NCBI GenBank assembly: GCA_907165135.1
Contig: OU015569.1
Location: 4,092,001 to 4,156,000, forward strand
DNA length: 64,000 nt
Direction: 5' to 3'
Source: Oikopleura dioica
Lineage: Eukaryota; Animalia; Chordata
This document shows positions 2,941-14,164 of this stretch, in pieces. Each line of letters begins with the position of its first letter. Position 1 is the stretch's first letter. The notes beneath the pieces were generated by a model that was given only the letters and a program-made list of their open reading frames with translations, was not told the origin of the DNA and made no database searches. Both the position numbers and the translations under genes were made by a program.

Positions 2941-4264
2941 TTACAAGAGACCAGCCATTTCTGCCATAAAATTTTCATATGCTTTATCTTGATTCTTTGG
3001 CGGAGCTGGCTTAGCGACGGGTGGAGCAGGACGCGTCGACAGAGCCCTCGGCGTAAGTGCAGCATTGCTTCTTTTGTTTCCCCTCAATGAGCTCGGCATG
3101 AACATGGTATTTTGAGCTAAACTTTGTAAGGAAATAAATTACAAAATAGAATCACTTTTTGGACGGTTAATAACTGGTGCGGCCGAGAGCGTTTTTTGAT
3201 GGGTGGCTGACAACTTTTGAGCGCTCTCTGTGGCTCCTTTTGGTGCGTTGTAGGACGTTGGAGCAGATGAAATGTCTGGTGCCATTAAGCCCGTTGCGGG
3301 AACAGCTGGACGCATGAACGCTGCTTGTGCTGCAAATTGAGGAATTCCAGCAGATATTGGCTATGGATCAGTAAACGAACTATTCTATTCGGTAGTTCTT
3401 ACCATAGCATGCGCTTGCATAGCCGCGGCAGGATCAACAGGCCGAGGGTGGAATTGAACAGCATAAGGATTCCTCGTTCGATTATCGAGCGGAGGAATTC
3501 CAGGAGGTGGAGGAGGAGGATTTTCTTCTTCGCGCTCTCGAGCTTCTTGTCCGGCCAGAGCCAGAAGAGTGTTTTGAATCGTGCTGTCTTTCTGCGATGG
3601 CCGTTTATATCTCTTCTTTTCTAAAAATTGTTACAAAGAGTAAATTGGTTAGTTTATACCTGGTGGAGGCCCGGGAGGAGGGCCAGGTGGCCCAGAGGAC
3701 GCGCGAGAGGATGATGATGCTCCCATTCGTGGGGGAAGACCCATTGGCAAGGGGATCCCAGCGATGCCCGAGTCCGGAAGAGGGGCATCTGGAAGTGGAA
3801 TTTGGTCAACGGACCAGTTCTTTGCTTTCAATACAGCTTGGTACAAGCTTTGTTTTCTTTCTCTTTCTCGCTCATATTGATTGTAGTCATCTTGGTACTC
3901 TTTCCAAGTGTCCATTTTTCCGGCAGTTTTGTAGTACTCTAGAATCTGAAACGAAAGATCATCTACCGAGTCATCTTCAGTTTAGAACCTTGAAATAAGT
4001 AGCTTTCATTCGTTGCCGTTTTTCTTGCATGACTCTGTCGGCGTAAGGACATTCATTTTCAGCGTCGAATTCGAGATCGTCAAGTTTGGATAGCTCATCG
4101 AGGACTGAGTTTGGATTCTTGCTTTTGATGACTGCCTCGCGCACTGCTTCTCGCTGTTTTTTGTGCTTTTTGAGTTGCTTCTTTCGCTCCTCTTTCCGCG
4201 CCTGGTCAGTGGGGTTCATGTACTTTCCGCCCTTCGTAGAGGAGGTTTTCCGATTGCCCCCCAT
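2941..4264 (-). CDS. WBP11: WW domain-binding protein 11 (splicing factor SIPP1/NpwBP)
   Basis: N-terminus TSSTKGGKYMNPTDQARKEERKKQLKKHKKQR matches the Wbp11 family. Central proline-rich PPGPPPGPPP tracts. C-terminus DKAYENFMAEMAGLL* resembles the human ending; stop at 2941-2943. Confidence 0.92.
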
Positions 4265-9755: not shown

Positions 9756-10357
9756 TATCTATTTTCATAATAAAATAATAGCTATTCCCTTCACAATTTT
9801 CGCCAGCCGCAATCTCTCTACTTCAAAACTCCATTTCTCATTTTTTATCACGTCTCTTTACAACGGTTTTAGTTTCTAGAACTAGGATTAAATTTTATTT
9901 TTTTTTTCGAATTTCATTTTTGGTTTTAGCGCGTCGCCGCGGCAAAGGAGCGTGGGCGGAATACGCGCTGCCCAATTCAAAAAAGCCCGAGACGAAAAAA
10001 CATTCCCTAAGCCAGAGACCTTTTCTCTCAGAAAAACACGAAGCCCATCATCTTTCAATTTGGCTCCAGTTTCGTATAAAATTGTTGTTATTTTTGGTCT
10101 TTGGTAGTTTTAAACTTTGCTTTGAAATTCAAATTATTGGGCGAATTTTTATTCAAATTGATTAGTATGGAGTTTTTAGTATAATCGATAAATATTTCTC
10201 GATATGAATGTCGTTCACTAAAATTTTAGGTGGATGAGAATCATCTTAGATAAACTGTTCTTCTTCTGAAAGGTTTCATTAACTACTGGCTTTGCTTCCT
10301 TTTAATATTTTTGGATGAAGAGCTTATCTGACCGCATTTTTCTTGTAGAGGTCGAGA

Positions 10358-10931
10358 ATGTTGAAGGCCGCCACTCGAGTCAGCAAAGTTGCTCTTCGAA
10401 GCGCCGCGGAGATTCCTGAGGGAGCCATGGCCTTCTCATTCGCTTCTCCCCACGAGGTAAGCCTTCAAACTTTGTCGTTCTCTGTTCATGTGAGATTCAA
10501 GGAGTTCTACACCGCCGACATCACCATCAAGCAGGTCGACATTCCCACCACCACTGGCATGATCGGTGTCCTCCCTTCCCACGTCCCCACCTTCGGCACC
10601 CTCGCTCCCGGTGTCATGACCGTCATCTCTGAGGCCAGCACCTCCAAGTTCTTCATCAGGTGAGTCTCTCTTTTTCCAAAGAAAAGCAAAGACCGATTGG
10701 TTAGCTCTGGCTCCTACACCGTCAACCCTGACTCCTCTGTCTCCGTCATTGCTGAGGAAGGTGCCGCTCTCTCCGACTTCGACAAGGAGGTGAGAATCTC
10801 AGTCCGCTAGCAGGATAATTCTAATGTCTAAATTTTAGGCTGCCCAGCAGGCCTTGAACGCCGTGAACACCTCCACTCCCGAAGGCGAGATCGAAGCCGC
10901 TGTTCTCTCTGACCTTGTCGCCAACTTGTAA
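10358..10931 (+). CDS. ATP5F1D: Mitochondrial ATP synthase F1 delta subunit
   Basis: FSFASPHE|EFY...KQVDIPTTTGMIGVLPSHVPTFGTLAPGVMTV...KFFI|SSGSYTVNPDSSVSVIAEEG; 4 exons with GT-AG introns; stop 10929-10931. Confidence 0.95.
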
Positions 10932-11260
10932 ACGATCCTTATATTTAACATCACTCTCGTAATCATTAACAATGATTCCTTCCCACAACAACACCAACAT
11001 GAGAAGCTCAACGCTCCGACCATTCTACTCTAGTTAAATTATTCATTTACGTATGTAAATGTAAAGTTCTGTCAAGTCCGAGAAAAGAAATCTTATTTAT
11101 TGATTCCAATTCAACTGTTCCCTGGAATAAAAACATTGGAGACAAACTTCAAATACACCTCGCTTTCTTGATCCTAACAGTTTCATTTCGGTTACGAGAA
11201 CTCAATTATTTGTTCTGAAAATACTGGGGCATTTTTGACGGAAAAATGATTTAGAGGAAA

Positions 11261-12219
11261 ATGGACGCAGACGCAGGAGCCGAATACTTGGCTTCCATTT
11301 TCGGAACGGAAAAGGATAAGTGAGTATCGCAGTCAACTAGAGCAGCCTTGTTGAGATTGTTGCTTAGGGTCAACTGCTCCTTTTACTTCAAAATCGGCGC
11401 CTGTCATTACGGAGATCGATGCTCGCGTTTGCACAACAAACCAACCTTCTCGCAAACGATGTTGTTGCAAAACTTGTACCGTTCGCCGATCTTGGACGAT
11501 GACAGCGGTATGCTCTATTTAAACGATCAAAATCAATGCTCTTTTCAGGCCAGCAGATCACCGAAACCATGCTTCAAAAGCATTACGATGAGTTCTACGA
11601 AGAGGTATTCTTTGAGATCGAAGACAAATACGGCGAAATCGAAGAGATGAATGTTTGTGAGAATCTCGGTGATCATCTCGTTGGCAATGTTTACATCAAG
11701 TTCTACAGGTCTGTCGATTGTTTTCTTCTTCGCCTGAGCTTTTGCCTAGGGAGGAAGATTGCGAAAAGGCAGCTGAAGGAGTGAATGATCGCTGGTTTGG
11801 ATGTCAGCCCATTGTGGCCGAGCTCTCTCCCGTCACAAACTTTAGAGAGGTAATAAAATTATATAATATTCCGACTGTTGTTATTCTTTGCTAAGTACCA
11901 TTATCTTATCTAGGCCTGCTGTAGAGACTACGAGATGGGAGAGTGCACTCGTGGTGGCTTTTGCAACTTCATGCACCTTAAACCGATCTCGAAAGATCTA
12001 CGAAAGAAACTCTATGCAAAGAAAGATAGACACAGAGGATACAACCCCGATAGACGGCGAGGAGGTCGTTCCAGATCTAGGTAATCTGAAAGTTAAAGAT
12101 AACGAGGTAACACTGACAATAAAAGATCTCCTGGTCGAAGACGAGATCGCGACCGCGGTGGCCGAGGTGGCCGAGGAAGACGCCATCAACCTGACTTGGA
12201 TTGGTCGCTCAACTACTAA
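11261..12219 (+). CDS. U2AF1: U2 snRNP auxiliary factor small subunit (U2AF35)
   Basis: [13 protein letters not shown]|[29 protein letters not shown] (ZnF1); [28 protein letters not shown]; ZnF2 [21 protein letters not shown]; RS/RG tail. Confidence 0.97.
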
Positions 12220-12393: not shown

Positions 12394-14164
12394 ATGGGGA
12401 AAATATTCATCGGCAATTTGACCGACAGGGCCGAAGGTCGCGATGTTGAAGACGCCTTCAGAAAATTTGGAAGAATCAAAGAGATTTCTCTTAAAAATGG
12501 CTTCGGTAAATAAGAGTGAATGTACAATTATTTTCAGGAAATTATTAGGCTTTGTCGAGTTTGAAGATGTCCGCGATGCTGAAGACGCAATTCATGAAAT
12601 GAATGGGGAGCGACTTTGCGGCGATAGAATTACTGTCGAGCTGGCGAAAGGTAAACATATTTTATCCACTCGTTTCTTATAAGTTTTGAAAGGCGGCGGC
12701 GGTGGAAGATATCGCTCGCGTTCACGGTCAAGAGGTCGAGACGGACGCAGCTCGTATTGGGACTCCCGAAGATCTGGTAGAGAACGACCGCATCGAACTC
12801 CTTACGCGGTTATGGTCGACAATTTGAGTAGCAGATGCACGTAAGTCGATTCGATTTCTTTGATGGCGAGAATCAAAAAATGGGCGAGACAAGATTTGGT
12901 GCCACTCACTTGGTTTTGTCTCGTTTCTCTCTGTGCTCCAAATCCTGGTCAAAAATTGTTGGGTTGTCGAAAAAGCTAGTTGGATAGTGACCTGTGGTGC
13001 CGTCCGTGATTGATACTGGCATATTCTCTCTATCTCTTGCTACTATTCATGTGTCTTTCATGAGACCATTGATCTGAAATCTTTTGTACTGAATGATCTC
13101 TGGTGTCTACAGCTGAACTCTGTTTTGGCGTGGCTGTTCGATAACCAAGTTGGACGCCTTGGTGGCATAATTGTAGAACTGATTCACATCATGGCCAACT
13201 ACTCTTTTCTTACCCGGTATTGTCACTTTTCTTGACCCATTTCTATTAACTCTAACTTCCAATTATCGCAAGTCCAGTTTACGCTTATGGAGCTGAAATA
13301 TACTCTGATCTCTGAGTTATTTGTTCTTTAGGTGGGCCGAGTTGAAGGACATTTTCCGCAAATTTGGTGAAGTGACATATACAGATGCTCACTACAGATC
13401 TGGTGATGGGAGAGGCGAAGTCTGTTTTTCTTCCCGAGAAGAGCAAGATCGTTGTCTGGACGAAGCCGATGGCATGGATATCAACGGAAGAAGTAAGTCC
13501 CTTCGAAACGCTCAAGTCTTTTAACGTTCTCGATAAGGCATCAAAGTTTCGCCTGGAGAAGGTGCTGATCAACGAGAGCGATCACGCGGAAGATACTCTC
13601 GAAGTCGATCTCGAAGCAGATCCCGTGGCCGAGGTGGTCGAGGCGGAGGTCGAGGAGACAGATCTCGCCCCCATCGAACAGAGTTTACTCTCGGCGTCGA
13701 TAACCTCTCTTCCCGCTGCGAGTATGTCCTCTTATTTCTATCGGCAATAATTTGTGTTCTTAGTTGGGCGGAACTAAAGGATCTCATGCGAAAAGCTGGA
13801 GAAGTTACATACGTTGACGCTCACACCCGCTCAGGTCGAGGTAATTGATTGACTTTGAAACGCCTCCGTACTTAAAATCGCATAGGTCGGGGAGAAGCTT
13901 GCTTTGCTACCCGGGAGGAGTTGTATCGCGCTCTCGAGGACTTACAGGGTATGAAAATCTACGATCGTGCTGTGAGACTGCGCGTCAAAGAAGACGGCGA
14001 TCGAGATGTCCGTCGATCGAGGTAAGTCGGTGTTTGTGGTGACTTGCGGTGAACCGTTTTTATCTAATAGATCCTACTCTCGCTCTCGTAGTCGATCGCG
14101 CTCACGATCCCGCAATGGTGCCCGTTCGAGGTCACGATCGCGAAGCCGTTCCCGCAGCCGATAA
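12394..14164 (+). CDS. SRSF4/5/6-family SR splicing factor with one canonical RRM and two pseudo-RRMs
   Basis: RRM1 KIFIGNL...[19 protein letters not shown]. Pseudo-RRM copy [30 protein letters not shown]; copy [32 protein letters not shown] tracts between the domains and at the C-terminus; 8 exons. Confidence 0.92.

Follow-up and report, generated by a model that had tools for sequence, protein, structure and literature searches.

U2AF35 (U2AF1) is the small U2AF subunit, which reads the AG at 3' splice sites. The canonical protein, described from human and, as U2AF23, from S. pombe (4YH8, 7C06-7C08, 1JMT), runs from an N-terminal motif through zinc finger 1, a U2AF homology motif (UHM) with RWF and zinc finger 2 to a basic Arg/Gly/Ser tail. 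In the yeast U2AF23-RNA structure, Arg28, His29 and Gln151 (human Q157) contact -3U, -2A and -1G/+1G (PMC7505975). Arg28 is stacked on -2A, contacts both His29 and the 2'-OH of -3U, and forms a bridge to finger 2, and the R28S protein binds about 10-fold more weakly; His29 stacks on -3U, and H29A weakens binding; Gln151 lies beside -1G/+1G and hydrogen-bonds Arg150, itself stacked on +1G, and Q151R binds more tightly with loss of selectivity (PMC7505975, PMC4536312). Loss of any of yeast F20, R35, R150, R159 and F165 abolishes binding altogether (PMC4536312). Q157 and the His29/Ser34 pocket are among the best-studied splicing disease positions and have been considered invariant across yeast, plants and animals. 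The cancer and MDS mutants Q157P/R and S34F/Y fall on this same position and in the same -3 pocket, sites that set +1, -1 and -3 preference according to the literature; they are somatic, heterozygous and selectivity-lowering, and lead to Pro, Arg, Phe or Tyr.

In larvaceans, U2AF1 is reported to be single-copy except in F. borealis, and ZRSR2 and the minor spliceosome have been lost in both the Oikopleura and the Fritillaria lineage (PMC13326754). Fritillaria borealis carries, beside a canonical U2AF1-alpha, the extra paralogue U2AF1-beta, whose finger 1 is remodelled and has His29 changed to Tyr (TCRYGDRCPKVH; TCRYG); the beta protein keeps Arg28 and Gln157, has S34P and R35K, and prefers AC-ending sites. 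O. dioica introns mostly end in AG, and O. dioica U2AF1 served Soo et al. 2026 as the conserved control (PMC13326754). The protein in the supplement of that paper (Soo et al., NAR 2026) reads GACHYG and CCRDY; neither Q157 nor the His-Tyr (HY) and Asp substitutions are discussed there, and the key of the alignment figure marks beta-specific mutations only (PMC13326754). In RNAcompete, GST-tagged O. dioica U2AF1 gave 1.8 for UAG, 1.3 for GAG, 1.1 for CAG and 0.3 for AAG (PMC13326754 Fig. S11), values that refer to high-affinity RNAs with central-A triplets relative to Fritillaria U2AF1-beta (PMC13326754), in an assay that covered Fritillaria 3' ends, the -3 base and the comparison with the beta paralogue alone. 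The order at -3, UAG > GAG > CAG >> AAG, is conventional and suggests that ordinary UAG sites are still preferred.

The window analysed here, a stretch of 64,000 nucleotides of Oikopleura dioica DNA, carries a U2AF1 gene on its plus strand at 11261-12219. By reading and translation it has six exons with 720 nt in total (239 codons plus TAA) and five introns of 48, 41, 41, 64 and 45 nt, all GT-AG; the bounds given in the sequence-only reading, 11261 and 12219, match the ATG and the stop exactly. Exon 1 (11261-11319) encodes 19 residues and then a split Lys codon, and is 100% identical to the database protein P0161 and to the published O. dioica U2AF1. Intron 1 (11320-11367), which lies outside the spliced-contig coverage, was placed by frame and homology. 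Exon 2 (11368-11507), whose junction with intron 2 was confirmed by contigs, holds zinc finger 1 (CCCH, 11375-11434); on its translation, a His codon, CAT (11405-11407), replaces Arg28 and a Tyr codon, TAC (11408-11410), replaces His29. The UHM is divided between exon 3 (11549-11708), which has contig-confirmed junctions and encodes the first half, and exon 4 (11750-11849), which encodes the second half with RWF and then SPVTNFRE (11826-11849) before finger 2. Translation and alignment showed that this last motif carries a clade-specific D-to-N change (TDFRE to TNFRE). Exon 5 (11914-12080) encodes zinc finger 2 (CCCH, 11917-11976), with the Asp codon GAC at 11926-11928 in the place of human Q157 (S. 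pombe Q151), and the start of the basic tail. Intron 5 (12081-12125) is rich in purines toward its 3' end, where the acceptor is AAG|A. Exon 6 (12126-12219) encodes the Arg/Gly-rich C-terminal tail plus TAA, with 93.5% identity to the end of P0161. The substitutions that had been noticed in both fingers (R28H and H29Y, and Asp at Q157) were thus confirmed by translation.

Part of the window was contained in 20 public runs from eight studies, mostly marine metatranscriptomes. Spliced contigs from three metatranscriptome runs of two studies (at least 99% identity) reproduced introns 2-5 to the base and did not differ from the window at 11926-11928; within the gene they departed from the window only by 11637 A>G and 12006 G>A, two synonymous changes. 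The RNA run X24, which bears the same species label, was 90-95% alike and covered exon 1 and the 3' end only, with the Asp codon outside. All differences seen in the U2AF1 gene in the RNA comparison (12/12) were synonymous.

The gene is tightly packed. An ATP synthase delta/epsilon-type gene (Pfam PF02823) lies upstream in the same orientation at 10349-11153 and has its poly(A) site at about 11153, which leaves 108 nt to the ATG of U2AF1; on the other side, 175 nt past the U2AF1 stop, an RRM/SR-protein gene begins at 12394. This packing fits an operon resolved by spliced-leader (SL) trans-splicing, and a candidate SL trans-splice acceptor (tttAGAG|gaaaATG, plus strand, 11253-11256) stands just 5' of the start codon, as suggested by its letters. 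When the published leader sequence (PMC6883708) was used, two sister-lineage U2AF1 transcripts (P0160 and P0226) were found to begin with the translated O. dioica spliced leader.

Exons were searched singly, and full-length database proteins (P0161) were used as a proxy for the whole spliced protein. Pfam zf-CCCH matched exon 2 at 2.4e-08 and exon 5 at 3.2e-05. Both exons had S. pombe U2AF23 as best match (PDB 4YH8, 7C06-7C08), gapless through both fingers, with exon 2 aligned to residues 16-58 (E 5e-17) and exon 5 to residues 147-186. P0161, which is about 97% identical to the window protein (91-100% by exon), aligned with U2AF23 (4YH8, 7C06) over 187 residues (7-193) at E 7e-70, and its residues 48-147 aligned with the human U2AF35 UHM (1JMT) at E 8e-36; Pfam found two zf-CCCH stretches in P0161 and RRM_1 in P0151. 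Two C-x8-C-x5-C-x3-H fingers therefore stand on either side of a central UHM. The residues essential for binding in yeast were all kept (P0161 F25, R40, R157, R166 and F172 for F20, R35, R150, R159 and F165), and the UHM features for predicted U2AF2 ULM binding were present, namely NDRWFG in exon 4 and an acidic helix A stretch in exon 3. At the family-invariant Arg28, His29 and Gln157 the window protein has His, Tyr and Asp; binding is tuned by these three residues but does not require them, so the departure marks a variant and membership stands. The published O. dioica U2AF1 differed from the window exons by a handful of residues, which places the window in O. dioica or a very close cryptic lineage. 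In Oikopleura dioica, the window gene is the U2AF1 (U2AF35) orthologue, and it is expressed; the first identification as U2AF35 is upheld by both fingers, the UHM and the full-length similarity to U2AF23. Synteny around the relatives' loci was not conserved with the window and added no support for orthology.

Compared with canonical U2AF1, the protein has the same order of parts, no gap in either finger and 10 of 13 RNA-contact residues identical. It is unlike the canonical protein in His-Tyr for Arg28-His29, Asp for Gln157, D104E, D150N and F83Y at columns that do not vary elsewhere, and in a short, Arg/Gly-rich tail. The motifs with which it had been compared were correct: S. pombe U2AF23 reads GACRHGERCSR and ACCRQHETSEC, and vertebrates, amphioxus and Ciona read GACRHGD/ERCSR and ACCRQYEMGEC. 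U2AF1-beta exists in addition to a canonical alpha, whereas only one copy, the protein described here, is reported from Oikopleura; in it Ser34 and Arg35 are unchanged, and its preference in RNAcompete, the assay that also included beta, is for UAG. Since U2AF1-beta combines His29-to-Tyr (RIGTCRYGDRCPKVH) with S34P and R35K and prefers AC, while Oikopleura has the same Tyr, Tyr29 alone gives no AC preference. The window gene adds a second, independent larvacean case of His29-to-Tyr. In contrast to the cancer mutations, the acidic residue of Oikopleura is germline-fixed, homozygous and ancient, and comes with two finger-1 changes and an unchanged Ser34. Position 29 is aromatic in ZRSR2 of the minor spliceosome, too (amphioxus and Ciona read GACRFG), but this protein differs in a long disordered N-terminal extension and a finger 2 of the type AICGLF/Y without Arg-Gln. 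A ZRSR2 identity was rejected, as the window protein starts 19 residues before finger 1, lacks an AICGL-type finger 2 and is of U2AF1 type throughout. In generic CCCH fingers (TIS11d/TTP, MBNL1, CPSF30/Yth1), x-Y-G after the second Cys and a C-[RK]-[DE]-[FY] start are common, as in Oikopleura, so that the Oikopleura changes shift U2AF1 toward the CCCH family-wide consensus; those proteins, however, have their fingers in tandem, with no UHM between them, and recognise different motifs.

When 1.84 billion cluster representatives were searched with the finger-2 piece, about 77 U2AF1-type fingers were recovered, of which only two (P0011 and P0016) had Asp. Their source contigs (L001-L004) encoded both HY and D, with intron positions different from those in the window. 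Three word searches (an Oikopleura-type query, a diverse animal profile and a plant/fungal-type profile) were combined with the representative search into a set of 415 U2AF1-type proteins. Position 157 was Gln in 403 of these, plants and S. pombe included, and Asp in 12, and positions 28-29 were RH in 339, KH in 3 and HY in 7, in a survey that is thin on fungi other than S. pombe and on protists, its main gap. The conservation of Q157 stated in the sequence-only reading was thus borne out, and Asp was seen in the Oikopleura-type lineage only among the 415, not in many lineages. Each sequence with Asp or HY fell inside one Oikopleura-type clade or had its Asp-bearing part from that clade. HY and Asp occurred together in the loci L001 and L004 and in the proteins P0151-3, P0159, P0160 and P0161. 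The six full-length Oikopleura-like proteins formed one clade (support 100/99) with two subclades and a stem of 0.5 substitutions per site. RH/Q was kept in the other tunicates compared (Ciona, Clavelina, Appendicularia sicula, Fritillaria borealis U2AF1-alpha), in amphioxus and in Fritillaria-like environmental sequences; fritillariids carry RH/Q even though they have diverged from mammals as far as O. dioica has (about 68% and 67% identity, respectively, to the mammalian reference).

The relatives' metagenome loci had pN values of 0.08 and 0.11 against the window, with saturated synonymous sites, and they encoded the same residues by other codons (Asp by GAT and Tyr by TAT, against GAC and TAC here). 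Retention of the residues despite synonymous saturation indicates that HY and Asp are old and held by purifying selection. R28H, H29Y and Q157D are shown to be genuine, clade-wide and kept by purifying selection, and the protein is a clade-fixed natural variant of a known splicing factor. As judged from the more than 400 sequences sampled, the HY/Asp changes are ancient and selected as well as clade-wide, and unique among them, which makes the observation stronger than the sequence-only reading could tell. An animal clade with Asp157 and His-Tyr at 28-29 in its only copy offers a natural experiment on the roles of these residues.

Two sequences appeared to combine canonical and Oikopleura-type features, and both were rejected as intermediates. 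P0154 (RH with D) was a chimeric co-assembly of an 84% arthropod-like N-terminus and a C-terminus 100% identical to Oikopleura clade D; P0155 (Q with an Oikopleura-type tail), also considered as a second copy, had an N-terminus 85-89% like U2AF1 of other animals. The chimera junctions lay at or inside the nucleotide-conserved finger 2, and both proteins, from the source 'merc', are metatranscriptome assemblies. Such chimeras could mislead automated surveys of Q157.

To locate the changes on the protein, 222 full-length sequences were aligned (6 Oikopleura-like and 216 others), and a column was called clade-specific when it was at least 85% conserved in the 216 and a different residue was fixed in all six. 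Eight columns were found (R33H, H34Y, N59S, N62L, F83Y, D104E, D150N and Q158D in P0161 numbering). His, Tyr or Asp at the three finger columns occurred in none of the 216 other full-length U2AF1 sequences (0/216), so the pattern is not due to chance. Three of the eight changes fell on the 13 RNA-contact residues among 138 conserved columns (hypergeometric P = 0.028, post hoc), and the other ten contact residues were intact (yeast F20, S34, R35, R145, E146, C148, R150, R159, N164 and F165). The claim that the substituted residues are RNA contacts holds, given their stacking and contact roles in the yeast U2AF23-RNA structure (PMC7505975).

The side-chain roles of His28, Tyr29 and Asp157 were extrapolated from the yeast crystal structure. 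Tyr29 would keep or strengthen the stack on the -3 base; Tyr is the residue at the aligned position of TIS11d-type CCCH fingers and of Fritillaria U2AF1-beta, and ZRSR2 has Phe. His28, a shorter partner, may provide a weaker form of the Arg28-type sandwich on -2A and of the bridge to finger 2. Asp157 could form a pair with Arg156 next to it (yeast Arg150, the residue stacked on +1G); for the cancer mutant Q157R the reverse, a repulsion of charges, has been invoked. Since a great many generic CCCH fingers start with C-[RK]-D-[FY], Asp157 should be compatible with the fold. On this analysis, O. dioica U2AF1 probably still binds sites of the type U-A-G|G, with its RNA contacts redistributed. Overall, affinity or the discrimination at -3/+1 would most likely have shifted modestly in this lineage, with no new specificity; because the -3 order (U > G > C >> A) was conventional in the sole assay, any shift may be small or nil. 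The sequence-only reading had proposed that the substitutions could retune 3' splice-site recognition in a genome with tiny introns, non-canonical donors and trans-splice acceptors. That reading is supported in part: the substituted residues are the right ones to matter, but retuned splice-site choice is hypothetical, and the sole functional assay points the other way. To tie the substitutions to tiny introns, non-canonical donors and trans-splice acceptors is conjectural, and fritillariids, with far stranger introns, keep RH/Q in U2AF1-alpha. An RNAcompete data set for the native O. dioica protein already exists (PMC13326754), and the substitutions qualify the use of this protein as a conserved control in the recent paper (PMC13326754).

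It is possible, though we consider it somewhat unlikely, that the changes are compensated or near-neutral drift, in which the three substitutions and D150N offset each other and 3' splice sites are recognised as in other animals, the changes having gone to fixation along the long stem of a lineage that evolves fast, with epistasis now locking them in. The conventional UAG preference of the authors' conserved control in RNAcompete (PMC13326754) and the mostly AG-ending introns of O. dioica are what drift would lead one to expect, as is the stem of the clade, long at 0.5 substitutions per site. Each of the two new residues is frequent among generic CCCH fingers and hence structurally safe, and the Asp lost in TDFRE is matched by one gained eight residues later. 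However, fritillariid U2AF1-alpha and the Appendicularia protein are equally diverged and keep RH/Q. The contact residues, moreover, are the most constrained in the family and yet are over-represented among the clade changes, and single substitutions at these sites alter affinity or selectivity in yeast and human (PMC7505975, PMC4536312). If the changes are functionally silent, they are informative on epistasis at a cancer hotspot.

A doubtful, stronger alternative to the redistribution of contacts is that oikopleurids, after the loss of ZRSR2, rebuilt both base-reading pockets of their only U2AF35 and thereby measurably changed 3' site use, the His29-to-Tyr change shared with Fritillaria beta being convergent. 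In the rebuilt pockets, -3/-2 would be read by an aromatic stack like that of TIS11d and ZRSR2, and -1/+1 by a clamp formed by Asp and Arg. Such pockets could bring tolerance of pyrimidine-poor, A-rich AAG acceptors, for example that of U2AF1 intron 5, or an altered choice of SL trans-splice acceptor and of the +1 base.

The window copy might instead be a specialised paralogue used at some sites only, for example trans-splice acceptors, with a canonical RH/Q U2AF1 elsewhere. U2AF1-beta in F. borealis is a precedent (PMC13326754), and P0155 joins a Q-type finger to an Oikopleura-type tail. This reading is very improbable: Soo et al. found extra U2AF copies in F. borealis only (PMC13326754), P0155 as well as P0154 is a chimeric co-assembly, all other Oikopleura-like sequences found have HY and D, and a second U2AF1 copy was not found within the 64-kb window. 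A sequencing or assembly error or a strain-private allele behind HY/Asp is already refuted by the data and has a negligible chance of being right, since three independent metatranscriptome runs agree with the window at this codon, the O. dioica sequence published from cDNA has the same residues, and Asp recurs, with a synonymous codon change, in two genomic contigs and in five or more distinct environmental lineages.

Further observations were made on the splice sites of the region and on gene structure in the relatives. A window-wide census of 3' splice sites (-3 and +1 bases; ORF-continuity and codon-usage heuristics, four versions) was dropped as unreliable: candidates were equal on both strands (218 vs 223 clusters), known U2AF1 introns were missed or undistinguished, and codon-usage scores barely separated the real frame in the U2AF1 gene. 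The -3 base was T in seven, C in two and A in three of 12 inspected introns, of which 7/12 were without transcript support, a sample that is an anecdote and no logo. Intron 5 of U2AF1 ends in ...ggtaacactgacaataaaAG|A, that is, in an AAG acceptor followed by A and without a pyrimidine tract. This is the site type bound worst by canonical U2AF1, yet intron 5 was spliced exactly in contigs from three metatranscriptome runs (X1, X2 and X3). A similar end, ...cctaaaaAG|T, is found in the relative L004 on an additional intron (about 3044-3099). The D-to-N change in the otherwise invariant TDFRE lies 8 residues before Q157D, so that one acidic residue is lost and another gained beside finger 2; the two may be a compensating pair.

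Exon structure varied within the clade. Window intron 4 (11850-11913), directly before the ACCRD codons, was absent in both L001 and L004; L001 was also without intron 2 and had an intron 3 of 535 nt, and the extra intron of L004 lay inside exon 4. One Oikopleura-like subclade (L004 2308-2387; P0151-P0153) had a Gly/Tyr/Arg-rich N-terminal extension of about 45 residues (MSYGGGYGRGGYGGGG...), contiguous with exon 1, which the window protein does not have.
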